Assembly (NCBI GenBank): GCA_001179505.1 | Contig: CDMY01000802.1 | Coordinates: 186,001-250,000 of the forward strand | Source of the DNA: Vitrella brassicaformis CCMP3155 | Taxonomy: Eukaryota > Protista > Chromerida | Direction of reading: 5' to 3' | Length of the DNA: 64,000 nt | Shown here: piece after piece, positions 4,685 through 64,000 of the stretch | Layout of the letters: each line of letters starts with the position of its first letter | How positions within the stretch are numbered: position 1 is the first letter of the stretch | The notes under the pieces: generated by a model | Database searches by the model: none | The model's input: the letters and a program-made list of their open reading frames with translations, nothing else | Told to the model about the DNA's origin: nothing | Program-made: the position numbers and the translations under genes

Positions 4685-4960
4685 TGTGATGGATCCATTG
4701 TATTGTTGCTGTCGGGCTGTGCGTGAGACCCTTTTGTGCGGCATGGCTGTGGTGGGTGGTGAGGGGGTCGTGTGCGTGCACAACCATGGACTGGACGGGG
4801 TGACGAGACCTTACACGGGGGGGAACACAATAAATCAACGCAATCAAGATGGCGTCAGTGGCTCCGTCTCAGAACAGACGTCATGGACACAGGCTAGGCT
4901 ACCGCTGCACGGAAGGCGAGTGGCACACACCAAACGGCGCCACACGTACGTCAGTCAGGA

Positions 4961-6731: not shown

Positions 6732-8135
6732 ATGGCGGCTGTTGGTGTGCCCGAGTGCGGTGTGTGTCACGAGGAGTACCAGTCCCGTGGCGACAAGGCG
6801 CCGCTGACACTGACGGCATGCGGTGAGTGAGCGATGCATCCACAAACCTAACACACATGACGGGTCTCAGCGCGACTGTTCTGGTGTGTCAAACCGGATG
6901 TGCAGGCCATTCGGTTTGTTCGCAGTGCGCTAGAGAGCTCATCCGCCATCACCCACATGGCCGTCGCGCTGCCCGTTGCCCCACATGCAGGTAGGTGCAC
7001 ACACCCACACACATGGAGGCAATACGGGTGCGTTGATGTGATGACATCGATGCTCCTGTATATTTCTGTGTGTTGCTTCATCACATGATCGATCAGGGTG
7101 GACACCACAGAGGATGCCGTGCGCCCCACCTACTTGGCGCGAGAGTGTGTGGCGACTCTGCAGGCCCTGGCCATGGGAAGCTCTGTGCTGTCCACAATCA
7201 AGACGTGAGAAGGCAAAATCGACCCAATATTCCTATGTGATGCATTGCATTGCTGGCTGGCAATGATGTTTGGTGCAGGTGGGCTCTGTGGCTCGTCGGC
7301 TGGCTCGTGTTGACGCTGGTATGGGTGTCCACGCCCCTGGTGGCCGTGGTAGTCTTCGTGTCGGTGTGGGTGCGCGACCTCCTGTTGGCCACCTTCACGG
7401 ACCTGATGGGCATACGAGTTCCACCGGTACGCACGAATAGCACTTTTCATGTCTCGTGCAGTGGGTGGATCGCATGCCTCTCTGAATCCAGATTCGTCTG
7501 CCGGCTGGCACGTCGCTCTCACCTTCACAGTACGTCGCCCTCATCAACATGTTCTACGGCGACATCAAGCTAGAATCGATCTATCGGTACGCACTGGACA
7601 CATTCACGCGACCCCACTCCTGTCCTTACTCTCTGTCTGTGTGTGTGTATAGGTCATCGCGTGACGGCTCCACATATGGCAACCTGCTCGACCGTGTGGG
7701 CGACAAGCTGCTCCTCGTGTTCATCATTCGCAAAGGTCGCTACGTCTTCGGCGCCTTCATCAGCGGCGGCCTGGAGCTTCCCGAGAACCCGACTGACTGC
7801 AACGAGTACGACTGTGATGTGTGGTGGTTCTCATTGGCCGGCCACTTCTGGAGGCCCACCAAGATAGACATTCCCCAACAGAAGCAGCGTGTTATACGGT
7901 GGCGGGAGCGGAGGGGACTACCGGCTGTGCGAAGGTGTTTGTCGGTGGGTATCTGTCGCTGGGCTGGCCTGAGGGTGGCCGGCCTAATGCTGACATCCGC
8001 AGCTGCCTGCAGGCCATCGACAGCAGCGACGTGCCTGCGGGCTACTGGGGCAAGTGGACTGGATATGGCGATGCTTGTCTGGGTGGCAGAGATGGGTTTG
8101 TGGCCGACGAGGTCGAGGTGCTGGCTGTACAGTGA
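6732..8135 (+). CDS. RING-HC finger + transmembrane segment + TLDc domain; frameshift at ~7894 (pseudogene or assembly indel)
   Basis: Exons 1-2 splice to CGVC-HEEYQSRGDKAPLTLTA-CGH-SV-CSQC-x16-CPTC. Then hydrophobic WALWLVGWLVLTLVWVSTPLVAVVVFVSVW, then GTSLSPSQYVALINMFYGDIKLESIYR|SSRDG...FVADEVEVLAVQ*. Confidence 0.8.
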
Positions 8136-9508
8136 GCCCTCGTTTTCTGCGCTCCTTCATCCATATGGTCGGTGGCTGTCTGTCGATCTGCCTGCCAGCC
8201 TGCCTGCGATGCATCCGTTATCTGATATTTTCTTCGTTGCCTGCCTGGCTGCCTGCCTGCCTGCCCTGCCCCTCCTGCCTTTTTCTTTCCTGCCAGCCTT
8301 CATACGGAATGTGTCTCTACATGCCACTGGCGATTCGATGGATGCCACGGCACGGCTGTGGGTGCGTGTGACAGAGACGCTTACTTGAGTGAGTCCGCCG
8401 AGCAGTGTGCATCAGTCCATCCCCCCATGGTGTATACCGGCGGCGAAGGGCTGTGGTTTGGATGCGATGAATAGAGTAATTGCAGTGCGATGGGGCACAT
8501 GTGTGTGTGGCTGAGGTGGTGGATTGACACGTGTGTATGTATGTGGCTGAATGGTTGCGTGGCCTTGAAGCTTCAATGACATCGATCGGCAATGGTACGT
8601 GCATCAAGCAGGGGTTGAATCATGGTGTAAGTGGGACACTTTTCCCTGCGCAGCACCTCGATCAGGTGGGGGGCCTTGACGATGAGGTTTGGGTCCATGA
8701 TATACCATTGGCCAGTTTCTTCGCACGAGAGCACCTAGGTGAATGACGTGTATTACTCAATCAAGGGGTATGTATACAGTGTAATCTGTGCGTGTCCACT
8801 CGTTTGATGATCCGGTTTGGGGCAGCTCCGTTAAGGAACATCAACGGCCGTGTAAATTGGTTGTGTCCCGCGCTCTCACACCTGATCGAGGTGTGTCCTT
8901 CACATCCCTTGATCCAATGTGATGGGGGAGTGGGATGGGAAGGCGGCGGCATTGATGGATCTGCAGCAGGGGATGGAGAAGTTGAGTCTTGGCGAGCAGG
9001 GGAAGAGTGGTGGACCTGCTGAGCGGCCGTAGGGAGGTCACAAGTCGCCTCATCCCGGCGCGGATCTATCTTGATTAACACCGGTTTCATGCAGCACCCT
9101 AGACCCACAGATGGCGAGCCATGAAGCCTTACACCATGATCATACTTCACATGCCATCGTCAAGATCCATCAACCAACCAAGGTGTGTCCCGCGCTCTCA
9201 CACAGACACTCACACTCACACACGCACGCGCACTCATGGAGGGAGGCAGTCGGCGGCCGTGTATATGTATGTCTCTGTGGTCAAGGCTTGACACTCCCAC
9301 AGAGACACAGACACCACAGCCACCTCACATCCATCCATCGATCGATCCATCCATCCATCCATCCACTGCCGCACATGTCAGCCAGCCATCCCATTGCACG
9401 TCTGTATGCAGAGCTGCCCCTTCCTCTCCTGAAGCCTCACACCCGCCCCCTCACTTAATCATCAACGAGAGGCAGTGTGTATGGATCATGTGTATGTGTG
9501 TGGACGAT

Positions 9509-12500
9509 CTAGCCTGCCTTGGTGGCCTTGTCTTTCTTACCCTTTCCCTTGACCCCTCCTCCCTTGCTGCTGCTGGCGCGCGTGGGGCGCATCTCAACGG
9601 CAGATTTCTTGCCAGACACGACAACAAACCTCCTCTGAGCCGCCTCTCTGATCTCAGGCACTAAGGGGAATCGTGGCTTGCTGCCAGACAGAGAGACCGA
9701 CCGCAGAGAGGGGAAGAGAGAGAAGGCCTCGGCCACTGCGTCGGCCAACGAGCGACACATAGCCTTGCCTTCCTGCTCTGTCATACCATAATGCCCCCCT
9801 TCAAGTCGCGCATGCAGGCTGATCTCAATCCTACTGATCCGCCCCATGGTCTCCCTCCCCTCCCCTGCCTGCCCATACACGCTCCACTTGATCTCCCACC
9901 TCTCCTGTGCCGGATCGCGATCAAAGAAGAGGGGCCCGGGGAAATGCACATCGAACCCGACACCTACTGTGAGAGCCGTGGTGCCTTCAGCCGACAGAAA
10001 ACCGACGGCAGCAGGCACCAAACACAGACTAGCACGGCGACAGGTCGTCTGCGGCCCATTGGCAACACCCTTCCCGGCAACCCCCTCTATAGCAACCGAG
10101 CTAACATCCCTTCTGAAGGTGACACTCTCGAGTGAGGGCAGGTCCCCCAAGACAGTGCCCACGCCCCCATCGTAGAAGGCCATGCCCTCAAAATCCTGCC
10201 TGACCTCGACTGACTCGACGGCCGGGAAGAGGGAGGCGGGACTACCGATGACGTAGGGGGGGAGCGGCTGCGAAGCGCCTGATGGCCTGATTGTCAGCTT
10301 CTTGGCCTCGGTGCAGACAAGGTCGTCCAGGCCGGGGGCCTCCCTCACCGCACCCTGGCTCCCGTGGGGCTCGAGAGTGACCTCCCTGCTATGTGCGCAC
10401 AACAGCTGGAAGGTCGGGACGGCGCCACCCAGCTCAGCAGCGGTGCCTGTGATGGGGAGGCGGATGTGGGGCTTGTCTGGGATGGGGCCGCGGATGCCTT
10501 CGTAGCGGCGTTCGTCGTGGGTCGGCACTCGGTAGTAGTCCTCGGTGGCGTTGGGGGCTAGGCAGGAAGTGCGGATGCGGTGGAGATTCTGCGCGGATGA
10601 GGCAGACAAATGTGTGTATGAGAGTGAGTGAGATCAGCGGATGGCAACGTTGGCTCACTTACATACCTGTATGTCAGCTGCCGACTGGATCTCCCTAGGC
10701 CCCACACCCAGCTGCAGCCTCTGCAGGCGACTCGTGCTCATCATGTTGACGAATCGGTCGACGGTCGAGCTGAGAGGTGGGGGTTGAGGGTGGAGGTGAG
10801 AGAGCTGACGAGGGCGGGCATCGAGCTGAACACGTCCGGTGAGGGAAACCAGCGTCTCAGCTGAAATGAATGAGAGAGAGGAGAGTGGTGAATGAGTTCA
10901 TGCAATGTAGGATGGCTCCGTGTGCGTGCCGTCAAATGCATACCTGTCGGCGTGCCTCTGAGAGCCTCGACGACGGCATGCAGGGTTACGTCATCCTCAG
11001 CGTGGGCAACAACGTCCTAATGCACACGCAGCATGCAAGCGACGACTGTATTCATCATGCCACTTATCTGTCGCTCTCTCTGTCGCACCTCGTCATGTGT
11101 GATGTGCAGCGATGCGACCCCAGCCGACGCCCGGCGAATGAACAACAGAGGCCCAAAATAGCCCAGACTCACCGCATTCAACTCCTTCAACGCCTGAAGA
11201 CATATGCAAAGCGAGACCGACTGATAGAGACTGCCAGATGGTTGGAAGGTATGCCCACCGGCAGCGTGTAGTTGCGATCGCCAGCTATGCGGCCCCATGC
11301 GTTGTAGATGGTGGCCTTTCGGAGGCGTGGGAACACCACTGGGGCCGTGCTGGATGGCAGCTCGACCTTGGTGACCTTTCCCCTCCTCATGGCCTTGACC
11401 AGCCTCCGCTGCGCCAACTTGCCCCTCTGGTGCCGCCCCCTCTTGGCGTCGGTGCGGGTGATCTCCTGCTGGCTGGGCGCCGACCCCTGTAGTGTGAGGG
11501 TGACGATGGTGGCGGAGAGGGCCTCCAGCAGACGCACCATCGCCGCACACGGGCTGTGACGCACACGCAACTCGCGACACGCAGACAACCGCTCTGAAAG
11601 TGGCCGGCATCAGAAGGGAACACGTAGAGGTGTATTCGCTTCCGTCCCTTGCTGCTGTCACCTTGGAGTAGGTCGATGCTGTCGTCAGGAGGTGGTGTCT
11701 TGACCTCTACGATGTGGTGCATGGCGCTGTTGGACGTCAGGGCGCGAAGTGCATGCTCGCACATGACAGGGACGCCATGCACGACACGAAGCCAAGGTAG
11801 CTGCCCAGCCCTGCAAACAGAGAGAAACGAATGGACAGCATCGGTGAGAGGCTTCTCGGTCTCATGTGTGGGCTGTGGTTCCGTACCGATGCGGTCGTCA
11901 TCACTGAGCCACAGGCCCTCGGGCAGCCCCTCCAGACACGCAAGCTCACCCTGTCAAGATGACAATAATCATAAACACATCACGATGCCCTGTATATCTT
12001 ACCTGCTCAGGTTGGTTGATTTTGTTGATGCCGTCTTCGATGATGTCGAGCTTCTCGACCGTCTGGTTGAGCTGCGCCGTGGCCGTCCCCTTGGCGTTGT
12101 CGATCTGCATCTTGGTGTTGCGCATGACCATACTCGTCCACACACGACACTGACGCTCGACAACCTGAATGCATTCGCCACACATCCACACACAACACAC
12201 AGCACCCATGCAATTGTGTGTCTTGCCCATGTGTGTGTATTGGCGTGGTGCATCTGCAGTCGGTTGTGTTCTACGTCTGTGTTGGGGGGCGGGAGGGCAT
12301 TCTTGGCCTCAAACACCTGACGGGCCTGGAGAATGCAGAGATACAGCACGACAAGTGGATGGTGGCATGGTATAACACGGCGAGTGCTGTCTTCATCCTT
12401 CTGTCACCTTTCCCCACCTTGGCTTCCGTCTGGTCGAGTCTTTGGATGAGTATGTGCAGCTCCTCGCGCATCGTGTTGAGCGCCGCCAATGCATCCTCCG

Positions 12501-25386: not shown

Positions 25387-25629
25387 GCGGTTCTCCTCGC
25401 CTCCTTAATGACAAACGCGAGAAAAACAAGAAAAACGCGCTTTGAAAATGGGGCCCGTCTCTGGGGCCCGCGGATTCTCGACAGAGGATTTGAATAGATC
25501 TCATCCTCCTCGTCATGCTGTTCCTTCCTGAGCATTTTATGTGGCACAGAACCAACAGCTTCCACCCATATGCACAAGGCAACATCCATGATAAATCCAC
25601 TCGAGTACGTCGCGTGCACATGCATCCTG

Positions 25630-27300
25630 TCATGTGACCTCACTCATCACTGCCTCATAGTCTCTCTCAGTCATCTCAAGCGGACATGACGGGTTGGAAT
25701 TGTTCAGCACCGCTTCTCTCGCCACCCATTCCATGTCAAAGGGTTGGTTGAATGATGCAGTGTCGAAGCGCTCAGGGATGCCGCCTACCCGCTGCTGGAT
25801 GTCCCGGATGGACCACAGCAGCCACTCGGTGGCCGGCAGCTCGGTGCTCTTGTCAACGTGGTCACGCAGATGGCCATACCACGACTCATCTGAATGGAAG
25901 CAGACTCGTGTATGGGTGGGTGGGTGGGTGGGTGGACAGACATGGATATTTTGTGTTGGTTTCGTACCTTCTGTGTTGGTGTTTCTCCCGCTGTTGGCCT
26001 CCTTGACGGCCGTGAGAGCTGCAGAAGCGATCTCAAAGAGCCTCTCCTCTAGCCGTGTGCCGCGGCCGCCCTCACCCTCTCCCTCAACAGCCCGCCGAAG
26101 GCACGAACTGAAGTAGGGTACCAGCAGGGTGGCATTCGCCAGACCGTGCGGCACGTCGTATGCGCCGCCAATACTCTCCGACAGGCAGTGGACGCCGCCT
26201 ACGTCAGAGTTGCTGAACGCAAGACCGGCCATCGTGGACGCCTCAGCGAGAGCCTTGAATGGATAGAGAATGGCACCTTCCTCGAGCGGCTCAGAGGGAG
26301 GGGCGGACGTGGCAGCCACAGCTGCAGGAAGGTGGACCAGGATCAGCTGGATGGACCTGCACACATAAACAGAGACAATGACGAACGACCATTCGTGATT
26401 GATGTGGGTGAGTTACCTGATGGCCAATGCGTCTGACACTGGGTTGGCGGGAAGGCCGGTGAAAGCCTCCATGGCGTGTGTGAGCGCATCGAATGCTGCA
26501 CACAACACACACGGCAAACAGGGATGGAAAGAGGCTCAAGTAACTGATGAGCCACACACGACGGAGGGTTCACTCACCTGTCTGGGCAATCAGGTGGACT
26601 GGTAATGTGGTCAGCAGCTCGGCATCCACAATGGCCGCATAAGGATACATGCCATCACCCTTGATCGACACTGACGGACGGCACACATGACACGCACAGA
26701 CACACGCGTGTGTGCCGAAGTCCATCCATCCAGTGTGCAGGTGGTGCTGACCTTTTCGCCTCGTCTTGGGATGGCTGAGCACGCTCACCCACGTGCACTC
26801 GCTGCCTGTCCCGCATGTTGTGGGGATAGCCACAAAGTGCAGCGGCCGATGTACAAACTTGTTCCGCCCGACAAACCTTAGCAGCGCATCGTCCGCGCTC
26901 TCACTGCTCATATTAGTTGCAAGCATCGCCCCGGCCTTTCCAGCATCGATGGCTGATCCACCTCCCAGAGCCACCACAGCAGAAGCGCCCTCCGACACAG
27001 CCATCTCCCCGATCTTGCGTGCGGTGGAAAGCCTCGGATTCACCTCGATAGAGTCGAAAACAGACAGCTCCCGAGGTGCGCCTGCCGCTGTGCGTATGGC
27101 ATCCATGGCCGTGTGGCACCATCGCGACGAGCGCAGCCCCTGATCTGTCACGAGGAGAACTCTGCCAGTGGGAAGCTCGTTCAGCAGGCTCGTGAGCGCG
27201 CCGTGCAGGATCCCGGGACGGATGAGCAGTCGAGTAGGGCATCGAAACACCTGCATCCGGGATATACTCTGACGGACGGCTTGGACAGCAGCGACCCTGC
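25630..27300 (-). CDS. Iron-containing (group III) alcohol dehydrogenase; 4 or more exons; N-terminus uncertain (ATG 27256 or an upstream exon)
   Basis: VLLVTDQG, VALGGGSAIDAGK, AIPTTCGTGSE, GMDAFTHAMEA, MAGLAFSNSDVGGVHCLSESIGGAYDVPHGLANA. The Asp/His/His/His metal ligands are present. Confidence 0.92.
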
Positions 27301-27847
27301 AGGCATCAAACACAACACACCGACACACACGTGGATGAATAGACAGATGGGTGGCTGGGCGATGCGTGGGCCTGCACCTGCTATTGATTGATTGGCCTTG
27401 TGATAGACTGCACGCAGCAGATGAAGATCTCACAAGGCAGAGCCCCCAGAGCTAAGAGAGCTAACAGAGTTCACAAGGGAGAGCTCACAAGGCTTCTTCA
27501 CTTCTACGCGGAACCCTCTTTCGGGGTGACAGAGTCTGCAAGCTTTGTTCCGATCGCGGGGGGATTCGTGAGGGGATTGCTTCTATTGCTTTCGCGCTGT
27601 TTGTTCCGCCACATGCCCCGCACCCTACCCTCAACCACATCCACTTCTTCAATCTTCTTTTTCCCTTTCGCTCGCGGTTTGTCGCCCGCTTTGAATGGCA
27701 TGCAGGAACACACACCGAATTGCCCGAGATGCAAAGGCGTCCAAGGATCCTGAGACTCGGGTTGGTGTGGCCACACACGCGTGGAACATGCAGTTGTGAT
27801 TTTGACATACATGCGCCCTGACTGGTTCACGAGACGCGAAAGACCGC

Positions 27848-44572: not shown

Positions 44573-46948
44573 ACAGACCACACACCACACCACACCACAC
44601 CACAGCAGCACTGATCTATCCGTCCATGTGTGTGTGTGTGTGTGTGTGTGGTGTCCGTCTTGTCTATCGCATCCCGTATTTATGATATGTCGTCGATCGC
44701 AGGCAGGTGTGTGTTGCGTGAGTGTGGATGGATGGAGGGAGGGAGAGATGGATGGATGGATCGCACTATTTTCATTGTATGGTGTGGTTCCCACGTTCGT
44801 TGTGCAGTGGAGTAGCAGCAGCCATCGCAGCAAGCAACTGGAGAGGGATTAAGGGAGGGGAGAGGGTGAGAGTGAGACAGTCGGGATGGCTGCGTCTGGG
44901 CCCAGACACATGCATACATTCGTCGATTGCCCGCCTGCATGTGTGTCGCATATCGTTTGTTTCTGTGTTGTATCTATTATCGTTTCTGTGTGTCTCTCTG
45001 AGTGCGTTTATGGGGTGTGTGGGGTTTTTATGGCTACTGGTTGGTTGGTTGGTTCATTCATTCACTCACTCATCCATCCGTTCGTTTTTGGCGTATGTCT
45101 AGCCAACCAACATGGCGTGCAGGCGGGGCGGGCGGGCGATGGATTGATGCGTGACATGCGCAATACATACAGTGGCTGCCTGCATCTTCACGGCAACTGT
45201 CTGGCGTCTGCTCCTCGAAGCCGTCAGGCTGAGGTTTACGCTCGTCAATGTGTCGTAAGCTCTCGGCCTGGCGTCATCGAGGCCGAGACACCGGACAAAT
45301 GCCTCTCAAGATGCAGCAAGTCGCGAGATGCCATGAGAGAGTGATGATCCATCCATCCGTCCACCCATGTGTGTGTGTTTGTGTAATTCACGTGCTTGTG
45401 AATGAGTGAGTGAGTGAATGCCTGATGGAGCGGAGTGCATTTTCTTTGTTTCTCTGTGCCTGCCTGTGCATCCATCGATCCATTCATTGTGTTGATCATC
45501 CATCCACTCACTTCCTGTGTCCATCCACTGTGTCGGTGTTGCGTATTTTTCTCGTCGCTGTTCGGTCGCCTGTGTCAGTCAGACACACATGAAGGAGAGG
45601 AGCGAACTGGCGGACGGACGGACGGACGAGATCCTTTTTTCCGACACTGTCCATCGTCGATGACCGGTGACATAGATGCAAACATGATGATGCGTGGCCA
45701 GGTGTTCATGCGGATCGACGTGTGCATGCCGTGTGCGTGCCGTGATGTGTCCGTGTACTGCGATGAGACGACAGACAGGGCAGGAGATCGATGACCGACC
45801 GACCGACCGAATGGGCGGCCGGGGTGCCATGTAGGTGTAGGCGTAGGTGTGGGTGAGTGAGATGCGCGAGTGAGCCGCCCCACTAAGACCACGAGCTCTT
45901 TTTTCCGTGGGGCCCTTTGTGCGACTCACTCGGTGTCTGGTTGGCTGTTGGTTAATTGTGTTGGCAGGCGAGGAGGGAGGGAGGGAGGGAGGTTCTTTTG
46001 GGCGTGCATTGGCTGTGGCTTTAGTCGTAGATACCTACCTGCATCGGGTGCCCTGGGTCGGTCGGTCGGTGGGTCTGTCTGACTGTCTGTTTCTTTGTCT
46101 TGTCTGTGGTATAGCATGTAGCATGTAGTGAGTGGATGGGCGGCCGGGTTTCCTTTTATTTTCTTGTCGTGTCCTTTGCAGTCTGTCGTCATACTGCGAT
46201 GTGTCTCTCGTGTGTGTGGTGCGGTAAGCAGCGTTTTCCTTTTCCTGTCTGCCTGCCTTCGTGCGTGTGTGTGTATATACGTGATTTGTGTCGTGCGTGT
46301 CTTTATGAAAGAATGAATGGATGAGTGCATTGCAGTGATAATGAATGAACGAACGACGAGTGCGTGAGTGAACCCCCTTATCTCCCCCCTCCCTCCTCGC
46401 TATGCCTTCGTTCGTTCGTGCAGTACTAATCAGTCAGTGAGTGAGTGTGTGCCCCATGTGTGTGGCCGATGGCTGATCTGATAGATGTATGTATGTGGGT
46501 GCTGTGTGTTTTGTGATTGATCTATTGCTGGTCGGTACGTAGCCGTCTCCCTCCCTGCCTGCCTTGGCTTTGCATTCCTTTGCATTTGTGGCATGGCTGT
46601 GTGTGGACGGAAAGACCGATGGACAGACGGAGGTCAGTCGGTGTAATGCATGTCTTCATTGAGTGACACCTCTTATCGGAGCTGTCAACCAACATTCAAA
46701 CGAACAAAACATCAGAGTATCTGCGTTGGTACTCATCACGAGAGGCACACACACGTCAGTGCTGAGGGGCAGGCAGGCAGGCAGCTAAGCCACACGCATC
46801 ACAGAGACTTGCCAGGTAGGCCCGATTGGCCTACGCTGACGCCGCACGACTCTCTCTTACAAATGAAAATGGCCGCACGAGACACATCAAACGAACAGTG
46901 ACACGAGACACAGACAGACAGACAGACATCGGCCCCACTCAGCCATTA

Positions 46949-48567
46949 CTACCTCAGCACGCGCAGCACTTCTATCTCATCAGCAGTGAACTCCAGCGAC
47001 CCACCCAACACCGCATCGCCATCCTCATCTCTCACTCCCATGTAGCCCTCAGGCAGATACTCGCTGTCGATGTACTGATAGCAGCTGCGGATATCGGAAC
47101 CATCAAACTCACCATCTATAGCAGTGCCATCTCCATCAGCATCAAACCCACTCCAGCCCAACTTCAGATGAGGTGGTTGGCCAACCATTAGCTTCGCTGT
47201 TCCCTGTCCCGTTCCCGATATCGCAAAGTATACATTGCTGTTCCTCTCCGCCAAGCTCACAGACTGCCTCTCTTCGTCGATGTCGATCTTGGTCGGCTTG
47301 TCGAAGTGGCCGGCCAGTGAGAAATACTACAGATCACGGTCCACGCCGTCACTTCTGTAGACGCCGAAGACGTACTTGTCCTTTCTGATAACAAACACGA
47401 GACCCCCCCACCCCACTGAGTCCAGGTCGTCATAGTTGGTGCCCTGCACAGAGTCCCACAGGTCGCCCCATTCAGTGCCGTGAACAGACGTCCTACACAC
47501 ACACACACACACACACACAAGACACACACACAGACACAGAGCCATCTGTCAGCTGTTGGCGTCACGGCATGAGATGTGTCTGTCTACCGGAAGAGTGTGG
47601 TGAGTTCTGTGGTGTCATTGCCCAGCAGGCCGAGCAGCCCCTCGTACTCCGACGCAGACAGCGATGTGCCCTTCGGCGCGGACACCCGCTGCACGTGTAG
47701 CACCTCCATCTCATCCGCATGGAAGAAGTCCGACCCGCCCAGATAAGCAGGATCGCCATTGCTATCCCCCTCCCCCTCCCCCGTGTAGCCCTCAGGCAGA
47801 TAGTGGCCCAAGGTGTACTGATGGCAGCTGCGGATGTCGGCTGCCGGCCGGTCACTGCCCTCGTCCTTACCCAAATACAGCCGCCCACCGATGACCACAT
47901 TCGCACCCCACACACTCCCCTCCCTCCCCGCCACACGCACATTCTGCTCCGCTCGGATGATGTCGACCTTGGTCGGCTTGCCGAAGTGACCCGCCAATGA
48001 GAAATGCCACAGATCACAGTCGTACCAGTGCCAGTCGGTCGGGTCGTCGGGTAAGAAGGCCGCAACAAGTACCAGTATCCAGACCGCAATTGATGTACGC
48101 GCCGAAGACGTACGGACATCAAACACATACAAATACTTGTCCTTCCTAATAACAAACACGAGAGGCATTGCATCGCCCACATTGTCCAGCATATCGCCGT
48201 AGGTGGTGCCATGCACAGACGTCCTACACACAGACACACACACACACACAGAATCTGCCCATCAGCTGTCACATGACCCATCCCAGCACTGTTGGCATGA
48301 TGCGTGTCTACCGGTAGAGTGTGGTGAGGTCTGTGGTGTCATTGACCAGCAGGCCGAGCAGCGCATCAGACTCCGACGCAGACAGCGATGTGCCCTTCGG
48401 CGGTGAGGCCTCCTGCACGCGACGCAAGTGGATCTAAACACACGAGTCATCCTCTCACACATCAAATGAAATGAATGGATTGATCGTGTTACCTGTTGGG
48501 CGGGCCTTGCCTCAACAGACGTTGCCACGCAGAGGATCAGCAGGACAGTCACTGCCCGAATCGCCAT
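46949..48567 (-). pseudogene. Signal peptide + two tandem TLDc domains; the second domain has an in-frame TAG at 47327-47329
   Basis: MAIRAVTVLLILCVATSVEARPAQQ | GTSLSASESDALLGLLVNDTTDLTTLYR | TSVHG...FHADEMEVL-linker-GTSLSASEYEG | TSVHGTEWG...DRDL*YFSLAGHFDKPTKI...FTADEIEVLRVLR*. Paralogs have W at the stop position. Confidence 0.8.
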
Positions 48568-48783
48568 GAAGTGAACTGGACGATAGCAGTCAACAAGTCT
48601 TCTTATTGATTTCTAAGGTAGCAGATGAACAAAGGCAGCGTCTGAAGTCAACAAGAAGACAGGAAGACAAGGCAGACAGACAGGGGGAGAGACCAGGCGA
48701 GGAGGGAGGGCTCTCTCTCTGTCGGGGTCTGATCGAGGCTGCCGCTTCCAGATTTCGAGTGGGTAAACCTTGGAGTGGTTGTG

Positions 48784-48952
48784 ATACGCTCGGCGGGCTC
48801 CGCTCCCACGGGGTCGCGCCGACTGCACGTCGTCGCCCAGCCGTCGTCATCCATCCCAGCCGACACTCTAACTGCCGTCTTCGCCGATCTCATACCGCGT
48901 AAAGGTGGCAGGGCCCAATCCGGTCCCATGCCCGTGCACGTGTCGTGCCCTC
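48784..48952 (-). repeat. Split direct repeat B2 (169 bp)
   Basis: Identical to 49110-49278 (atacgctcggcgggctcc...gtgtcgtgccctc). Confidence 0.97.
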
Positions 48953-48967
48953 GGGGGACCGGCGGGT

Positions 48968-49109
48968 TGGGTGGGTGGGTGCGAAAAATCACGGAGAGCG
49001 CTTGTCCTGCCAAGCGCACCTGCGAGCCGGAGACGGTGTGTGTCGATCGGTCGCTCCCGCCCGCGGCGCGTATGTACGCGATCGCTGCGCTACGCACGCG
49101 TACGCTACC
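48968..49109 (-). repeat. Split direct repeat A2 (142 bp)
   Basis: Identical to 56430-56571 (tgggtgggtgggtgcgaaaaatc...cgtacgctacc). Confidence 0.97.
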
Positions 49110-49278
49110 ATACGCTCGGCGGGCTCCGCTCCCACGGGGTCGCGCCGACTGCACGTCGTCGCCCAGCCGTCGTCATCCATCCCAGCCGACACTCTAACTG
49201 CCGTCTTCGCCGATCTCATACCGCGTAAAGGTGGCAGGGCCCAATCCGGTCCCATGCCCGTGCACGTGTCGTGCCCTC
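49110..49278 (-). repeat. Split direct repeat B1 (169 bp), abutting A2
   Basis: Identical to 48784-48952. Confidence 0.97.
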
Positions 49279-49404
49279 CCAAAGGGCCAACGGTAGCGCG
49301 GTATGAGAGAGGAGTGGCAGTTAGTGTGTGGGAGGAAGCGTAGTATTCGTTTCACGCAATTCTGGTTGTCCCGTCGAGTTGTTAGCCCCTACCTGTTGCT
49401 TGCA

Positions 49405-50384
49405 ATGTCGGCGCCCTTTTGCCCGACTCCTCGGCCGCCATCGCTCGGCACGCTGCCGCGTCCGTGTCGTTTGGCCCATCTCGCCCGTCGTGTCGTGGAC
49501 TTCGGGCCGTGCAAGCGGTTCTGTCAGACGTCCGCCCTAGTGACCGGTGAAGGACACCGGCTTATGTTGAATACTCTCGATCTGCTACACGAGGTATGCC
49601 TGTGCGTGTCGTGTTGTCGGTCCGTCAAGTGTGTCTCGTGGTTGTCTCAGAGCGGGTACTCGATGAGTGATATCGTCTATATCTTGGCGCAAGCCGCCTG
49701 CCAGCTTGACGAGTGTTTCAGACTCTTCCGTCCCGGCGGTCAGCGAGAGCGTATGCTGGCTTGTCTTGTGCATACCTTTCTTGCACATTGCTTGCTTGAA
49801 GACGAGACTCTCTCGCTTTCGACCTGGTATACCCGTCTGGTAAGTATGGCCCCGTCTGGCGCGTATGGCTGTAATCGCTGGGCTACACAGCTTGAATCGC
49901 TGCTTCACTGTACTGTGTATTTCAGGCAACTTCCTACTGCTCATTGTCTACTTTCGAGAAGTCTTCCTTCCGCCTGTTAACGCTTCAGAGCTGTCGTCTG
50001 TATGTGGCCGATGAGATCGTATTGGCACGGGCCGCGTACTTTCGATGTAATTCCTCCTGGCACGACCCGTCCCTCATTGTTGTTCTTTCGTATTTCCCTT
50101 ATGCAGTCGACAGGCGGGCAAGGCCGCCGGAGGCTGACGGGGATGATGACCTTATGAGCACGGGTCTAACGGTAAGATTCCACCCTTCGTGCGGAGACAC
50201 GTTAGTTAGACAAGCCTGTCATTCAGGTGTCTGTGATTGGTCCCTTCGGTCGAAGCCTGCCGCTCTTCAGCGATGCGTAAAGGGGCTGCTATTTTGGTGT
50301 CGCGCTTGGCGGCAAAAAGAGCGTCCGTGGGTAGAGGGAGGTGACCTGCATAGATTGACGGTAACCGGGTGCAACAGCGACTGA
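49405..50384 (+). CDS. Intron-containing passenger gene inside the element (helical, possibly cyclin-box-like alveolate family); 3' end uncertain
   Basis: GT-AG introns 49594-49650 (gtatgc..ctcag) and 49840-49925 (gtaagt..ttcag) splice to LNTLDLLHE|SGYSMSDIVYILAQAACQL..LVHTFLAHCLLEDETLSLSTWYTRL|ATSYCSLSTFEKSSFRLLTLQSCRLYVADE. Family assignment is from recalled motif pattern only. Confidence 0.6.
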
Positions 50385-52159
50385 TACGAAGTGTGCGTGT
50401 AATGTGAGAGTATCCCTTAAGTGCATGTTCGCTCATTGTCATCTCGGCCTATCCCGCATACGGCGCAATGTACTGTAATGTACTGTTACGTCGTACCGGA
50501 CCGGTCTCAATCCGGAGGGCAATGGTTATCCGGCGCAATCGACCTCCGAGACAGATCTGTCCGTATAATTGGTGTTCAACGCACAGTATCATCGTATGTC
50601 GCGCGAGTAGGTGATTGAGTCAGGTACGCCTAATCAGCAAAGCCTTCGAGGCAAATGCGCCTGGTGACGTGACGCGTGAGTGACGTCCGTTGCTCTCTCT
50701 GTTCGATGTGTCTCATAGTATGCGTTCCGTGTCTCATTGTATTTGGCGTTTAGCCATAGGTGTCCCTTCTGGAAACCCATGTCACCTGCTGTGTTTGTCC
50801 CTTGGGTGACTTGCTGGGTGACGTCGCTTGGTGACTGAGACCTGTCATTTCGCTGACTGCCCTCAGTCGCATCGAAAGATAGCACGTGGGTATCCGCCAG
50901 CCGGTGAGCAAGTCCCTAAGTCTCGCCTACAGGTAAGCGATTCCTTCCCGCAGTCGTGCGGCACCGTCGAGTGGGTTAGTCTTACGCCATATACGCGCGT
51001 CATCGGTGAGCGCGTGGCGAGACATGCATCGTTGGCACGCAAGTCGTTGCGGCAAGTGTACCTTACCGATTACCCGGTGTGTGGATCGTCAAGTACATCG
51101 CGGGTAAAATTTGTCGCTTATTGCCATCTCGGCCCATCCCCGCACACGTCGTAATGTATGATAACGTCGTGTCGGATTGGCTACACTCCGAAGGGCAGTG
51201 GGTATCTCGTAAGCGTAACCTACACGAGGGAGATGTTTTAAGGGCAAGGGTCGCTCGTCGGCAAGGCCGTTCCCCTGCGCGAGATAAGCTTGTTGTCTGT
51301 CGGCGCCAATCACAATGGCGTGTCTTCTAGGTGGAGACTCAACGGTCGCGTGACTTGGACTGCCAGTCATCGCGAGGGGACGCAGGCAGGTTGTTAAGCT
51401 TCGTGCAGTGGCGGTGTACGTAGACTGGAATGTGAGGGCAATCGGGTATGCCGGCGTCTAAGTCCCTCATTGGGAGTTTGCACTTGCCGACACGCGTGAT
51501 TCGTCGACTAGCAGCTCTCGAGGGCAACAGTGCGTCACCGTGAGTGTCTGAGTGCTCGAGACAAATGAGACGGGCATGTCCTCCGTCGTCGAGGGTATGT
51601 CTTATCGCTGAGTGAGTTGTCAGGTCATGTACCACCGCAGGTGTACCGTGGTAAGGTGTTAAGAGACCCGTACTTTCTTATTGAGTGCTTCTCTGGTGTA
51701 AACCCTTTGAGTCCCCTTCACCTTCCCTTCGGTCGGGTGAGATTCCCGAAATGGCCCAATGGTGTGTGGGAGCGCGAGAGGGATGTGCCCCTCGGCGAGT
51801 GAGAGCTCACAACTCCAGCGAGCAACGCGTGCCTCCCTCTGGATAGATATGGACTCGCCTATGAGTGACCCTTGAGACAGACCCAAGGATGCGTTGTGCA
51901 CGTTGTGCAGCCCGACGAGCTCCCTGTCATGCTTTGAGCCGCGACTGCCCGATCGAGCGGTCACTCTCGTGTCGTGATGGCCCCACTCCCGCAATGCTAC
52001 CTTTTCGTCACGTTTCGTCAAGTCTGAGCCTCGTCGACTAGTCAGTCTTGCGATGACACCATACGTGTCGGATAGTGAATGTCACTATAACTTGAGCCGT
52101 GATGGCCGCTTCATCCGGTCCATGTCGTGATGCGTCAGGCCGACGGCCTCGTGGGTTGA

Positions 52160-53990
52160 ATAGTGCACCCCGGCAATGTCTCCTGCGATAGCCCTATCGC
52201 CCGTCATCCTCGCAATGTCTCGGGCCGTAATGGCCTGCCTCATCGAATAGTCAACCCCGGCATTGTCTCAATATGCGATAACTCTATCGCCCGTCATCCC
52301 CGTAATGCTTCGGGCCGTGATGGCCCCACCGACCAGACTCCACGATGTCTCGGGCCGCAATGGCGCCGACTGGTGGGTTTCTCCGGCGCTTGCCGCCTAT
52401 GGATGTTGTACGGCGTTTGACGCCGATTGATGATTATGTTCGGCGGTGCAGACTGCGCCCCGTCGAACCGTCAATCCCCAAACGTCCCGGGCCGCCATGC
52501 CCTGGTCGAACACTCAATCCGCTATGCCTCGGGCCGCCATGGCCGAACGAATCGTCAATCCCGCAATGCCCCGGGCCGCCATGACCTGACCGAACCGTCA
52601 ATCCCGCAATGTCCCGGACCGCCCTGGGTGATTACGTACGGCGACACCGACTTCGCCCGTCGAACCGTCAATTCTACAATCATGCCCCGAGCCGTCATGG
52701 CCGGATCGAAGAATGAATCCCGCAATGTCCCGAGCCGCCATGCCCTGATGGAACAATCAATCCGCCATGCCCCGGGCCGCCGCTGTGTGTGACCCTTAAG
52801 ACAGACCCAAGGATGCGTTGCGCACGTCGTGGAGCCCAACGCGCTCCCTGCCCTGTTTTGGGTTGCGACGACTCGCTCGAGCGGTCGCTCTCATGCCGTG
52901 ATGGCCCGACTCCCGCACTGCTATGGCCGCGTCAAGTCTGAGCCTCGTCGACTAGAGTCTGAGCCTCGTCGACTAGTCAGTCTCGCGATGATACCACACT
53001 TTGTCGGATAGCGAGTGTCGCCATGACTTGAGTTGTGATGGCCGCTTTACACGGTCCATCTCGTGATGTTTCAAGCCGACGGCCCCGTCGAATAGGAAAC
53101 CCCGGCAACGTCTCCCTATGCGATAGCCCTATCGCCCGTCCTCCTCGCAATGTCTCGGGCCGTCATGGCCTGCCTCATCGAATACTCCACCCAGGAAATG
53201 TCTCAATATGCGATAGCCCTATCGCCCGTCATCCTCACACTGTTTCGAGCCGTGACGGCCTGCCTCATCGAATAGTCCACCCCGGCAATGTCTCAGTATG
53301 CGATAGCCCTCTTGCCCGTCATCCTCGCAATGTCTCGGGCCGTGACGGCCTGCCTCATCGAATAGTCAACCCCGGCACTGTCTCAGTATGCGATAGCCCT
53401 ATCGCCCGTCATTCTTGCAATGTCTCGGGCCGTCATGGCCTGCCTGATTGAGTGGTCCACCCCGGCAATGTCTCAGCATGCGATAGCCTTATCGCCCGTC
53501 ATCCTTGCAATGTCTCGGGCCGTGATGGTCTGCCTAGTCGAATAGTCCACCCCGGCAATGTCTCAGTGTGCCATAGCCCTATTACCCGTCGTTCTCGCAA
53601 TGTTTATTGATGGGCTGCGTCATCGAATAGTCAAAACCGGCACTGTCTCAGTATGCGATAGCCCTATCGCCCGTCATTCTTGCAATGTCTCGGGCCGTGA
53701 TGGCTTGCCTCATCGAATAGTCAACCCCGGCACTGTCTCAGTATGCGATAGCCCTATCGCCCGTCATTCTCGCAATGCCTCGGGCCGTCATGGCCTGCCT
53801 GATTAAGTGGTCAGCCCCGGCAATGTCTCAGCATGCGATAGCCTTATCGCCCGTCATCCTCGCAATGCCTCGGGCCGTGATGGCCTCACCGACTAGATTT
53901 CGCGATGTCTCGTGCCTCCATGGCCTGCCTCACCGAATAGTCAGCCCCGGCAACGTCTCAGTATGCGATAGCCCTATCCCCCGTCATCCT
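52160..53990. repeat. Tandem array of ~90-bp units (dimer of ~43+47-bp subunits), interrupted by a ~924-bp-offset internal duplication
   Basis: Exact 90-bp period at 53281-53370 and 53371-53460 (cccggcaatgtctcagtatgcgatagccct...gaatagtcaac). Confidence 0.92.
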
Positions 53991-53994
53991 TGGA

Positions 53995-55320
53995 TCGAGC
54001 AGTCAGTCCTGCAACGCCCCTGGCCGCCATGGCCTCCCCGAACAGTCAATCCCGCAATGCCCCTGGCCACGAAGGCCTCATCGAGCAGTCAGTCCTGCAA
54101 CGCCCCTGGCCGCCATGGCCTCATCGAGCAGTCAGTCTGGCAATGCCCCTGGCCGCGAAGGCCTCATCAAGCAGTCAGTCTTGCAATGTCCCTGGCCGCC
54201 ATGGCCTCCCCGAACAGTCAATCCCGCAATGCCCCTGGCCACGAAGGCCTCATCGAGCAGTCAGTCCTGCAATGCCCCTGGCCGCCATGGCCTTCCCGAA
54301 TAGTCAGTCCCGCAATGCCCCTGGCCGCGAAGGCCTCATCAAGCAGTCAGTCTTGCAAAGCCCCTGGCCGCCATGGCCTCCACGGACAGTCAGTCTCGCA
54401 ACGCCCCTGGCCACGACGGCCTCATCGAGCAGTCAGTCCCGCAATTTTTGTGGCCGCCCTGGCCTCCCCGAACAGTCAGTCCCGCAATGCTCCTGGCCAC
54501 GAAGGCCTCATCGAGCAGTCAGTCCGGCAATGCCCCTGGCCACGAAAGCCTCACCGAGCAGTCAGTCCCGCAATGCCCCTGGCCGCGAAGGCCTCATCAA
54601 GCAGTCAGTCTTGCAATGCCCCTGGCCGCCATGGCCTCCTCGGACATTCAGTCCCGCAATGCCCCTAGCCGCGAAGGCCTCATTAAGCAGTCAGTCCGGC
54701 AATGCTCCTGGCCGCCATGGCCTCCCCGAATAGTCAGTCCCGCAATGCGCCTGGCCGCGAAGGCCTCATCGAGCAGTCAGTCCGGCAATGCCCCTGGCCG
54801 CCATGGCCTCCCCGGACATTCAGTCCCGCAATGCCCCTAGCCGCGAAGGCCTCATCGAGCAGTCAGTCCGGCAATGCCCCTGGCCGCCATGGCCTCCCCG
54901 AATAGTCAGTCCCGCAATGCTCCTGGCCGTGAAGGCCTCATCAAGCAGTCAGTCTTGCAATGCCCCTGGCCGCCATGGCCTCCCCGGACAGTCAGTCCCG
55001 CAATGCCCCTGGCCGCGAGGGCCTTACCCAGCAGTCAGTCCCGCAATGCCCCTAGCCGCGATGGCCTCATCGAGCAGTCAGTCCCGCAAAACCCCTAGCC
55101 GCGACGGCCTCCCCCAACAGTCAGTCCCGCAATGTCCCTGACCGCGATGGCCCTCATCGAGCAGTCAGTCTCGCAATGCCCCCGGCCGCGGTAGCCTCCC
55201 CCGGCCGCGGTAGCCTCCCCCAACAGTCAGTCTCGCCATGTCCCTGACCGCAATGGCCTCCCCCAACAGTCAGTCCCGCAATGTCCCTGGCCGCGATGGC
55301 CTCCTCGAGCAAGTCAGTCT
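53995..55320. repeat. Tandem array of 43-bp units (~30 copies) with alternating variants
   Basis: Units gagcagtcagtcctgcaacgcccctggccgccatggcctcccc and gaacagtcaatcccgcaatgcccctggccacgaaggcctcatc each count 43 nt. Confidence 0.95.
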
Positions 55321-55524
55321 CGCCACGCGCCGAGCCGCGATGGCTGGTGACCCCTGTGCGTGTCAGTGCGGTGACTAAGTTGGTGACCTGTGCGCCCGTC
55401 GGCGCGATGAATGTGTTGTTGTTTGCGGTTCGATTGTGGGTGCTTGTTGGGTTCATTGTTATGACAATGTCTGCCTCATGATGGTTGTGGAAGGCGCCGA
55501 GACATCGGCGGGGATCCCAAGTCG

Positions 55525-56010
55525 TTGAAGTCGGCGGATCCAGCAGCAGGGGCGTTGCAGTCGATGGATCCAGCAGCAGGGGCGTCGAAGTCGGGATTCA
55601 GCAGCAGGGGCGTCGAAGGCGGCGGATCCAGCAGCCGGGGCGTTGAGGTCGATGGATCCAGCAGCCGGGGCGTCGAAGTCGGCGGGTCCAGCAGCAGGGG
55701 CGTTGAAGTCGACGGGTCCAGCAGGGGCGTTGAAGTCGGCGGATCCAGCAGCAGGGGCGTTGAGGTCGATGGATCCAGCAGCAGGGGCGTCGAAGTCGGC
55801 GGATCCAGCAGGAGGGGCGTTGAGGTCGATGGATCCAGCAGCAGGGGCGTCGAAGTCGGCGGATCCAGCAGGAGGGGCGTTGAAGTCGACGGGTCCAGCA
55901 GCAGGGGCGTTGAGGGCGACGGATCCAGCAGCCGGGGCGTTGAACTCGATGAATCCAGCCATGGCGGCGTCGGACACGGCGGTTCCAGCCGCAGGGGCGT
56001 TGAAGTTGAC
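55525..56010 (-). repeat. 30-bp tandem array reading as (A/I)DF(D/N)APAAGS decapeptides in a degenerate 5' ORF of the element
   Basis: Minus-strand unit gccgacttcgacgcccctgctgctggatcc = ADFDAPAAGS. One 27-bp unit and frameshifts at the flanks. Confidence 0.85.
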
Positions 56011-56429
56011 CGACTCGCAGGGGGGGCGTCAGAGACGGCGGGTTCAGCAGCAGGGGCTGCGGTGAACAGTCCAGCCGCAGGGGGGGTTGAAATCGTTGGA
56101 TACAGCAGCGATGGCGTCGATGCTGGCGGATCCGGCGGCAAGGACGTCGGGGACGGAGGGTGCAGCGCCAGGGCCACCCAGGGGTGTCGGAGACGTCGGA
56201 TCCAGCAGCAGTCTCTCGGCGGCTTTCTGAACCCCGCGACGAGGGAGCTCCGCGTAGCGGGAAGGGCAAGCGGGCGCCCTGAGGCTGGTTGGCGGTTGGC
56301 TTCTCCCTGGTGTGGCTCCTTTACGCCACCTCCCGTCGGTCTCGCCTCGCTTCGCTGAGACGCCCCCGGCGTCATGGGGCGCCTCCCCGGCCTCGGCGGA
56401 CGAGTGCGGGTGTAAGTGGGTGCGAAGCA

Positions 56430-56571
56430 TGGGTGGGTGGGTGCGAAAAATCACGGAGAGCGCTTGTCCTGCCAAGCGCACCTGCGAGCCGGAGACGGTG
56501 TGTGTCGATCGGTCGCTCCCGCCCGCGGCGCGTATGTACGCGATCGCTGCGCTACGCACGCGTACGCTACC
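56430..56571 (-). repeat. Split direct repeat A1 (142 bp), 5' end of the element
   Basis: Identical to 48968-49109. Confidence 0.97.
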
Positions 56572-57229
56572 AAAGGGGCTGGCTCCCCGATGAGGCTGCG
56601 CAGTGGCGTATACTGACCAGCGCTTCACAAGTCTCCAATAGTGGGGAGCCAATCCGTCCCGTATTTGGAGTGGTTTCAGGCAGCACCCTATCCAAGGCCC
56701 CATCTCCACACTGACTCTAAAAGAACCAGATCTGACGATGGATAGAGAGCCAAACAGACAGGCAAGGCGATGAATGAATGAGTGATTACAGACACGCACG
56801 TCTCCCTGTATCGTGTGTGCCTCCGTCAGGGGCAAGGCTCACGCTGGCGCCTTTCATCCGTGTGCGCGTATATAGAGACCAATCATTTGCATGGCTGGAT
56901 GGTTCGGAACAGATTCTATCACGGTCTCACGAGTGGATGAGTGTACGACAACACAAGACACTGAATCAATCCATCCATCCATTGACTGACACCACACATC
57001 CACTGAATCAGCACAGGCAGGCAGGCAGGCAGGCAGGCATGCAGCAGGCCACACATCACAGACACTTGTCAGGTAGACCCGATTGACCTACCTACGCTGA
57101 CACAGTACCGTACTAGAAATGCAATAGGCACACAATGGCCTCACAATCGAGACAGAGAGGAAGACGAACGTGGATAAAAGTGCCGACGACAGACAGACAG
57201 ACAGACAGACAGACAGAGATGCGCCCCAC

Positions 57230-57408: not shown

Positions 57409-58368
57409 TTAAAATGCGGCAAAAACTACCGCGGTCAGCCCCACGAGCACCGCAATGGCAATCTGCGTGCGGCTGGCGCTTGCACGCAGCACCTCAATCT
57501 CGTCACCCATGAACTCCAGCGACCCGCCAAACAGAGCATCGCCATCCTCATCCCTCTCTCCAATGTAGCCCTCGGGCAGATCGTCGCTGACGATGGCCTC
57601 GTGGTAGCAGCTGCGGATGTCGGCAGCAGGCTGGTGACTGCCGCCGCTGCCACCCCAGCCCAAATGCAGCGCCGCACCGATATTCACATTCTCACAGCAC
57701 ACATCTGCCCCCCTCACCGCCACAGTCACAAACGTCTCATTTGAGTCGAGGTCCATCTTGGTCGGTGTGGGGAAGTGGCCCGCCAACGAGAACCGCCACA
57801 CATCACACATGTAGTTGAGGGTGCCTGTCTTGTTTACATCGGTGAACTTTCGGGTGTGGTCGTCGGGCTGCAGCAGACCGCCACCGATATAATAGCCGAA
57901 CACATACTCGTCCTTTTTGATCACCAACACCAGAGGCAGTGCGTTGCCCACTCGGTCCAGCAGGTTGCCATATTCAGTGCCGTGCACAGATGTCCTACAC
58001 ACATGCACACACACACACACACACAGACGGTGAAGGATCTTCCAGCCATTGTTGACATGGCATGATGTGTGTGTACCGGTAGAGGGAGATGAGTTCTGTG
58101 GTGTCATTGACCAGCAGGCCAAGCAGCGCATCATACTCCGACGCTGACAGCGATGTGCCGTTCGGCAGGTCACTCTGCACACGACGCAGATGCACCTGAA
58201 ACACACGAGTCAGTCAGTCAGTCACGCCACACCAAAACATTTATGTCTGTGAATGAATGAATGAATGAATGGGTGACTGACTCGTGGATGTGCTCATACC
58301 TGTTGTGCCTCAGCAGACGTCCATGCCACAGAGAGAATCAACAGGTAAACCACTGCCCGAATCGCCAT
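57409..58368 (-). CDS. Signal peptide + TLDc domain + hydrophobic C-terminus (candidate GPI/TM-anchored surface protein); 3 exons
   Basis: MAIRAVVYLLILSVAWTSAEAQQ | VHLRRVQSDLPNGTSLSASEYDALLGLLVNDTTELISLYR | TSVHGTEYG...FMGDEIEVLRASASRTQIAIAVLVGLTAVVFAAF*. N-glycosylation sequons NGT, NDT, NKT, NET. Confidence 0.8.
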
Positions 58369-58698
58369 GACCTGGAGCCAACAGAGTGTTCTTATTGAGT
58401 TCTGTCGATCAGCAAAGGCAGCCAGATGAACAAAGGTGAGCTCCAGAAGAAGACACAGAGGAGAGGGAGACAGGGAAGGGGAGAGGAGGGGAGCTCTCTA
58501 TCGGGGCCTGTTGATCGGAGCTGCCGCTTCCGAGATTTCTGTGTGCAACCTCATCGGGGAGCCAGCCCCCTTCATTTGCCGCCTCTCATCTGTCGTCTCC
58601 TTTTCTCCCGGCACACGATCTGCAAGCTCAGCTGCTTCTGGGAGAGGGGACCCGATAAGCGTGAGTCTGTTCTGTGAGCTTGACATAAGGCAAGGCTG

Positions 58699-63387: not shown

Positions 63388-63623
63388 CCGTGAGCAACAG
63401 GATGAGGGAGGGAGGCCGCGCTATCCATGGGCGACGCTCTCTGCTGCTGCGTGTGTGTCTGTGTGGCTTCTTCCGTTGCCTGTGTCCATCCATCAGAGGG
63501 TGAGGCCGTGAGCAACAGGATGAGGGAGGGAGGCCGCGCTATCCATGGGCGACGCTCTCTGCTGCTGCGTGTGTGTCTGTGTGGCTTCTTCCATTGCCTG
63601 TGTCCATCCATCAGAGGGTGAGG
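63388..63623 (+). repeat. 2 x 118-bp tandem duplication inside a possible signal-peptide-bearing gene start
   Basis: ccgtgagcaacaggatgagggagggaggccgcgc...catcagagggtgagg starts at 63388 and 63506, with one visible substitution. Confidence 0.9.
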
Positions 63624-64000
63624 CATCCGCGACGGCGGTCGCTCCTCCGACTGCGTGTCGCCCGACAACGTCACCGTCGCTCCCGCGCCTGGGGCTTCAT
63701 GCTATGAGTGGTAAACAGAGTGACTGACACACGGACGGGACGGGAACAGCAGGTCGGTCCTGCAAGGCAAGTTGGTCGACTGATGGCTGCACGTAGGGAT
63801 TATGACTACGAGGGGCACAATTTGACAGCCATCATCGAGCGCAAGGGGCTGGGACACATGGTCAGTCAATCAATCACTTAATTCATCACTTCACACAGGC
63901 GATTGAATCCCCCACCCACTGGACTGGATGGCTTGCCTGTCTGCCTGCCTGCCTTGTGAGTGCGGTGCAGGTTGCGCGGCCATTGTCAGTCATACTCTCG

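Follow-up and report, generated by a model that had tools for sequence, protein, structure and literature searches.

A possible non-autonomous split-direct-repeat element in the spacer between two TLDc paralogues of Vitrella brassicaformis

Introduction

Between two tandem genes of the TLDc family, contig CDMY01000802.1 of the chromerid Vitrella brassicaformis CCMP3155 (assembly GCA_001179505.1) carries a block of 7,789 nucleotides (nt) in which two repeated sequences, A and B, each occur twice in the order A, interior, B, A, B. The question raised by this locus is whether such a block represents an inserted mobile element or a product of rearrangement that resembles one. The stretch of DNA analysed here, referred to as the window, comprises 64,000 nt (64 kb) of the forward strand of the contig, is free of N, and is numbered such that a window position equals the record position minus 186,000. 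Searches for further copies covered the window and about 59 kb in three other Vitrella loci, approximately 123 kb together, or about 0.17% of the 72.7-Mb Vitrella genome.

An initial annotation, made from the sequence alone, described the block as a recent-looking, cargo-carrying and non-autonomous relative of the retroelements that are mobilized by a tyrosine recombinase. Here, we describe an analysis of its repeats, its borders, its interior and the spacer in which it lies. We present evidence that the block has the geometry of a split-direct-repeat element and sits at its site as a discrete unit would, and we tentatively interpret it as one inserted copy of a non-autonomous element of this kind, similar to the tyrosine-recombinase retrotransposons PAT, Ngaro, and VIPER. 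Furthermore, we weigh this interpretation against local rearrangement, misassembly and the integration of a circle.

Results

The A and B repeats define the borders of the element

Repeat finding and blastn resolved the element into six parts, which follow one another on the minus strand as A1, a 7,151-nt interior, B1, A2, a 15-nt spacer designated x, and B2:

56430-56572, minus strand: A1, 143 nt, repeat at the outer 5' border, a 100% match to A2
49279-56429, minus strand: interior, 7,151 nt, about 44% of it in tandem arrays and devoid of enzyme domains
49110-49278, minus strand: B1, the internal B copy, 169 nt, abutting A2, with base 49110 common to both
48968-49110, minus strand: A2, the internal A copy, 143 nt, an exact repeat
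48953-48967, minus strand: spacer x between A2 and B2, 15 nt, unique in the window
48784-48952, minus strand: B2, the outer 3' repeat, 169 nt, an exact repeat

The A copies are identical at 143 of 143 nt and the B copies at 169 of 169 nt, and two exact repeat pairs of this kind are far beyond chance. The minus-strand order given in the initial annotation is thus borne out, as is the length of B. The A repeat, listed there as 142 bp, is 143 nt long once the base shared with B1 is counted, and the outer end of the element correspondingly lies at 56572 rather than 56571; the alternation of A and B had been described correctly, without mention of the unique spacer between A2 and B2.

Position 49110 is part of both A2 and B1, and an equal base stands at the two outer borders, 48784 and 56572. 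The B1/A2 junction therefore equals the two ends of the element joined to one another with one base counted once, as had been proposed. The flanking sequences read ...CCCCTT(T) and (T)CACAACC and have at most 1 nt in common, so that the element is bordered by no target-site duplication, again in agreement with the earlier description.

The element occupies an enlarged spacer between two TLDc genes

The neighbours of the element are tandem paralogues, both on the minus strand:

47327-48567, minus strand: TLDc gene #1 (P0121), 332 amino acids (aa), the downstream neighbour, with a conserved upstream block that extends to 48756, possibly 48770
57409-58368, minus strand: TLDc gene #2, 250 aa, the upstream neighbour, a paralogue of gene #1

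The two genes are approximately 66% identical at the nucleotide level, and their upstream blocks are conserved out to 48756 and 58539, respectively, or in the case of gene #1 perhaps to 48770. This homology of the upstream regions ends 14-28 nt short of B2, the outer end of which lies 216 nt from the annotated ATG at 48567 (the initial annotation had placed it about 215 bp upstream). The distance between the two genes is 8,841 nt, and it falls to 1,052 nt without the 7,789-nt element, whereas tandem TLDc neighbours at other Vitrella loci are 0.14-3.8 kb apart; the locus therefore has the appearance of an ordinary spacer that has taken up an insertion. In addition, the outer end of each repeat falls at a break in the homology of the flanks, which fits, and is easier to explain by, a discrete inserted unit with physical ends. 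Positioned immediately ahead of the conserved gene #1 promoter block, the insert, if it is a mobile element, could also influence the expression of that gene.

The layout is that of split-direct-repeat retroelements

Split direct repeats in the order A1-[open reading frames]-B1A2B2 are the published defining layout of PAT, Ngaro, and VIPER elements, a correspondence that the initial annotation had recognized. The Vitrella locus displays it: A1 equals A2, B1 equals B2, B1 abuts A2, and the target site is not duplicated, as in the split-direct-repeat class. The reverse transcriptase/RNase H and tyrosine recombinase of the class are not encoded, as judged by Pfam, and neither is a methyltransferase, the domain by which DIRS/PAT elements are told from Ngaro/VIPER elements.

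In VIPER of T. cruzi, the A repeat is 173 bp and the B repeat 219 bp in length, sizes near the 143 and 169 nt found here, and each pair is 100% identical in some copies; the order A1...B1A2B2 is likewise that of the Vitrella element. SIRE, a truncated VIPER derivative of the same organism, consists of A2, approximately 30 bp of unique sequence and B2, and is thus a direct precedent for the arrangement A2-x-B2. This likeness to VIPER and SIRE is one of layout. VIPER encodes gag-like, recombinase and reverse transcriptase/RNase H proteins, whereas the Vitrella element encodes no enzymes, and SIRE is highly repeated, whereas the Vitrella element is present once in about 123 kb.

The Ngaro elements of Cafeteria burkhardae, a protist, share the A1-[open reading frames]-B1A2B2 layout within GC-rich units of approximately 6 kb, and are known to leave isolated AB repeats as solo remnants; neither Ngaro-type open reading frames (ORFs) nor a second copy was found for the Vitrella element in the DNA searched. 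Split direct repeats, with A2 a copy of A1 and B2 a copy of B1 as here, are likewise a feature of PAT and kangaroo; these elements are defined also by reverse transcriptase, methyltransferase and recombinase domains, all of which are missing from the Vitrella element. TOC1 of Chlamydomonas reinhardtii possesses an unusual split terminal-repeat arrangement and a non-coding interior, with an internal tandem array according to the initial annotation. TOC1 has been described as a non-autonomous retrotransposon of the DIRS order, and the initial annotation had likewise called it non-autonomous. It is a multi-copy element with documented transposition and related autonomous elements of the TOC3 type, none of these being features shown for the Vitrella element.

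The interior is composed of minisatellites and unique DNA

Tandem arrays identified with Tandem Repeats Finder sum to 3,171 nt, or 44% of the interior, and two gene models have been annotated within it:

55523-56057: 30-bp minisatellite, 18 copies, open in all six frames
53994-55344: 43/86-bp minisatellite, about 31 copies
53088-53886: 90-bp minisatellite, about 9 copies
52464-52781: smaller array of the 43/86-bp unit
52158-52325: two-copy array of the 90-bp minisatellite
55476-56375, minus strand: annotated single-exon gene model, 299 aa, starting 54 nt after A1
49405-50280, plus strand: annotated spliced gene model, 205 aa, in the unique part of the interior and on the opposite strand

A higher-order repeat of approximately 930 bp is also present, in that the block 51859-52364 recurs at 52783-53300 with about 84% identity. 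The unique remainder amounts to approximately 2.7 kb (49279 to about 52000) and contains no long conserved ORF. Bacterial contamination was considered as a source of the interior and rejected, dense ORFs being absent.

The 299-aa model is mostly translated 30-bp array and has no true match in Pfam. Exact look-up of its ORF returned the genome record only and no transcript assembly, though the index includes Vitrella transcript contigs; in a homology search with the same ORF, low-complexity matches filled the candidate list, and the protein itself was absent from that collection. As a gene, the 299-aa model is probably spurious. For the 205-aa model, whose exons were searched as separate pieces, no ORF piece had a match in Pfam, PHROG or PDB, and the longest interior ORF, which belongs to this model, yielded a poor fold in a single-sequence AlphaFold prediction (mean predicted local distance difference test score of 46). 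Interior ORFs had no match among PHROGs and PDB sequences, and neither Rfam families nor tRNAs were detected in the window. A functional cargo is not supported, and the description of the element as cargo-carrying is not sustained: its interior consists of minisatellite and about 2.7 kb of unique DNA, with two ab initio gene models lacking domains or homologues.

The boundaries coincide with an inverted sequence, a hairpin and short motifs

Several short features are located at or near the junctions of the element:

56572-56602: left arm of a 31-nt inverted homology, stopping exactly at the outer base of A1
58542-58572: right arm of the same homology, 2 nt upstream of the promoter/5' untranslated region block common to TLDc genes #1 and #2
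49186-49332: imperfect hairpin with arms at 49186-49225 (in B1) and 49297-49332 (in the interior) and a 71-nt loop
56665-56675 and 48770-48780: AACCACTCCAA, an 11-nt direct match without mismatches, the first copy lying 93 nt outside A1 and the second 4 nt outside B2

The two arms of the inverted homology match at 28 of 31 positions, including a core of 21 of 21, and bracket the whole unit of TLDc gene #2, approximately 2.0 kb. Gene #1 retains only AGGTT of this sequence, in direct orientation and 14 nt from B2. The inverted copy is nearer to the gene #2 version than to the gene #1 remnant, which gives it the look of a templated patch where the outer flank joins A1. It had no further occurrence in the sampled DNA (the window and the other Vitrella loci), and may represent a templated patch, the remnant of an inversion or a regulatory motif.

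At the opposite end of the interior, the hairpin has a predicted DNA folding energy of -34 kcal/mol (z = -5.1). Its loop contains the inner boundary of B (49278), and B2 possesses one of the two arms only. The hairpin also sits just upstream of the annotated 205-aa gene on the plus strand. The inner boundary of A, in turn, falls between two tandem copies of TTCGCACCCAC. The significance of the 11-nt match is borderline (approximately 0.02 against shuffled sequences), and it may reflect either a templated patch or chance.

Discussion

A possible non-autonomous split-direct-repeat element

Our preferred interpretation, which we put forward tentatively on the strength of the repeat geometry and the insertion site, is that the block between the two TLDc genes represents a single insertion of a non-autonomous element with split direct repeats, comparable to TOC1 of Chlamydomonas or to a long SIRE-like relative. 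A mobile element is plausible; its movement, the existence of a partner element and transcription are what we infer. Under such a model, a transcript would start inside A1 and end inside B2, and would thus be devoid of both extreme ends. Reverse transcription would in turn use the internal B1A2 copy to restore these ends and to close the copy or bridge it. An autonomous relative would provide the recombinase and reverse transcriptase in trans, and these would then deliver the product to a new site without duplication of the target. The minisatellite-rich interior would serve as filler, and not as functional cargo.

Several results weigh against this interpretation. No reverse transcriptase, RNase H, recombinase, integrase, gag or methyltransferase domain was found within the element (Pfam, 61 stop-to-stop ORF pieces, E<=1), which bears out the earlier statement that transposition enzymes are lacking. 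The 98 longest ORFs of the window outside the element likewise yielded none of these domains; the only Pfam families among them were kinesin, TLDc, Fe-containing alcohol dehydrogenase (Fe-ADH), Patched/sterol-sensing and AAR2. Neither blastn nor nhmmer detected further copies of A, B or the interior, diverged ones included, in the 123 kb searched. The 5' and 3' ends of A had no exact match in two scans of JGI metagenome contigs, a set that may or may not include the Vitrella transcriptome, and an ORF spanning B1-A2-x-B2, in one of the six frames, had no match among 1.8 billion protein representatives. The repeat census in the genome paper reports 0 bp of DIRS elements in Vitrella versus 22.8 kb in Chromera, although families of very low copy number (one or two copies) are overlooked by de novo repeat finders.

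The boundary features are a further difficulty. The 31-nt inverted copy of sequence from near the gene #2 promoter, which adjoins A1, counts against integration by a recombinase, because conservative integration does not predict such a patch. The hairpin at the boundary between the interior and B1, and the tandem motif at that between A1 and the interior, would suit template switching. Finally, the 100% identity of the repeats may in part be a product of the assembler, because A and B are both longer than the k-mer used and each would be a single graph node that was written twice. The identity is accordingly weak evidence of recency, and the label recent-looking depends on it.

We regard it as doubtful that Vitrella, with 0 bp of DIRS elements in the census, holds a recently inserted, enzyme-less split-direct-repeat element. 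If it does, the locus would indicate either an overlooked active tyrosine-recombinase retroelement in a chromerid or some other route by which circular or terminally redundant DNA is inserted; for the latter, the templated, inverted patch where A1 meets its flank would suggest that ends were joined and not cleanly recombined. Should the element prove mobile, no earlier description of a split-direct-repeat (DIRS-order-like) element would exist for Vitrella, a relative of the apicomplexans that is poor in transposable elements and reportedly has none of this kind, and the locus would point to an overlooked autonomous partner.

Possible local rearrangement

The explanation that survives best beside a mobile element, although we consider it rather unlikely, is a local, non-mobile rearrangement in which A, the interior and B were originally ordinary, unique spacer sequence. 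In one route, a nascent strand that had reached the end of B would have jumped back 7.46 kb, copied the 143 nt of A, added 15 nt, re-entered at the start of B and continued replication from there. In another, a 7.46-kb unit would have been duplicated in tandem and the interior of the second copy subsequently lost. Either route would leave a 327-nt A-x-B insert that imitates a split-repeat element, and, if this is what happened, the geometry regarded as diagnostic of such elements can also arise when templates are switched in a spacer rich in minisatellites.

A rearrangement of this type would be in keeping with a region that is already duplicated on scales of 30, 43, 90 and about 930 bp, with the single nucleotide of microhomology at the B1/A2 junction, and with the position of the inner boundary of A between tandem copies of TTCGCACCCAC. 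Since the second arm of the hairpin is missing from B2, B1 looks like the original context of the B sequence, and the 31-nt inverted copy of nearby sequence at the outer edge of A1 has the appearance of a templated patch. The lack of another copy or of enzymes in the sampled DNA, together with the 0 bp of DIRS elements in the census, also counts in favour of local rearrangement. Duplications attributed to fork stalling and template switching or to microhomology-mediated break-induced replication (FoSTeS/MMBIR) resemble this locus in several respects: copied segments are short, with templates a few kb off, microhomology amounts to 1 nt, a junction carries a small insertion, nearby sequence recurs as an inverted patch, and breakpoints fall at hairpins and slippage-prone motifs.

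Events of the FoSTeS/MMBIR type alone, however, explain neither the large spacer nor the presence of ends at the breaks in flanking homology. A spacer of 8.5 kb would be left unaccounted for when those of related gene pairs are about 1 kb, and the landing of the second switch on the last base of the inverted patch would be a coincidence unless a physical DNA end had existed there. The tandem-duplication route requires in addition a deletion that removed 96% of one copy and yet stayed within that copy. Residual similarity beyond the repeat boundaries did not exceed shuffled controls, whether the interior was compared with x plus B2, the end of the interior with A2 plus x, the A1-side flank with B or the B2-side flank with A, and no template for spacer x was present in the window.

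Possible assembly error

An assembly problem, in which the true locus differs from the record (for example, in that the 326-bp B-x-A unit forms a longer array or the pieces are arranged differently), appears improbable. The assembly was constructed exclusively from Illumina reads using velvet (k=75), SSPACE, GapFiller, ICORN, IMAGE, and REAPR, and a short-read graph might have been threaded once per edge, or a gap closer might have inserted sequence from elsewhere. With A and B both longer than k and each a single node used twice, the recorded order traverses the edges flank-A, A-interior, interior-B, B-A, A-x, x-B, and B-flank by a minimal path, and an alternative order would use identical edges; more than 3 kb of minisatellite is contained in the element. 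Against such an error, the window is free of N, REAPR was run on the assembly, and inserts of 550 bp and 1 kb are able to bridge A and B. Moreover, the B/A junction and the 15-nt x could not have been invented by an assembler, and must exist somewhere in the DNA of the organism.

Possible tandem duplication of a short unit or integration of a circle

Very improbable, in our judgement, is an origin from two tandem copies of a 326-bp unit (B-x-A on the plus strand), one of which received an insertion of unrelated DNA in place of x, or, in a variant, from a circular DNA bearing A and B that integrated through homologous recombination. The starts of B2 and B1 are indeed 326 nt apart, and a crossover in A between a chromosomal A-x-B and a circular A-interior-B would be predicted to give exactly the observed order. 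The interior, however, has no terminal inverted repeats, end duplication or transposase, and the deletion of x would need to be exact; the B/A junction of the circle would itself require an origin, which returns the problem to the other explanations.

Other classes of element were rejected. A long terminal repeat (LTR) retrotransposon, or its derivatives of the LARD (large retrotransposon derivative) and TRIM (terminal-repeat retrotransposon in miniature) types, does not fit a left end made of A only and a right end made of B-A-x-B, with no common terminal repeat; B moreover ends in ...GCGTAT, and neither TG...CA termini nor a 4-6-bp duplication is present. Helitrons have 5' TC and 3' CTRR ends with a 3' hairpin and insert between A and T; the ends (T)GGTAGCG...GAGCGTA(T) on one strand and TACGCTC...CGCTACC(A) on the other do not conform to this. 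A Crypton, a DNA transposon with a tyrosine recombinase, was rejected because no such enzyme is encoded (Pfam).

Other genes and repeats in the window

The TLDc family is large and expanded in Vitrella: approximately 30 paralogues have been annotated, spread over at least 13 contigs and often arranged in tandem, and some of them are fused to RING domains. Within the window, further TLDc genes are located at about 4077-5290 and 7486-8385, in addition to the gene #1 region (46900-48570), and gene #1 possesses a signal-peptide-like N-terminus. A JGI transcript contig of 2,879 nt, which corresponds to positions 8200-11413 of another Vitrella locus, contains two adjacent complete TLDc ORFs of 233 and 305 aa, which suggests read-through or polycistronic-looking transcription of a tandem array, or else a merge during assembly.

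A gene for an Fe-containing alcohol dehydrogenase, composed of six exons, is located at 25506-27525 on the minus strand, and its exons are matched at 100% by MMETSP and Logan transcript contigs. Every organism-named match listed for it outside Vitrella was bacterial (Acidobacteria, Planctomycetes, and others), with 40-47% identity; judged from these sequence matches, the gene may be an old bacterial acquisition.

Two minor repeats complete the inventory. A 118-bp unit occurs twice in tandem at 63388-63624 with 99% identity, and (TG)n/(CA)n microsatellites lie in or near introns at 47490-47545, 48220-48255 and many other sites in the window, where they yield pseudo-ORFs of the type CVCVCV.

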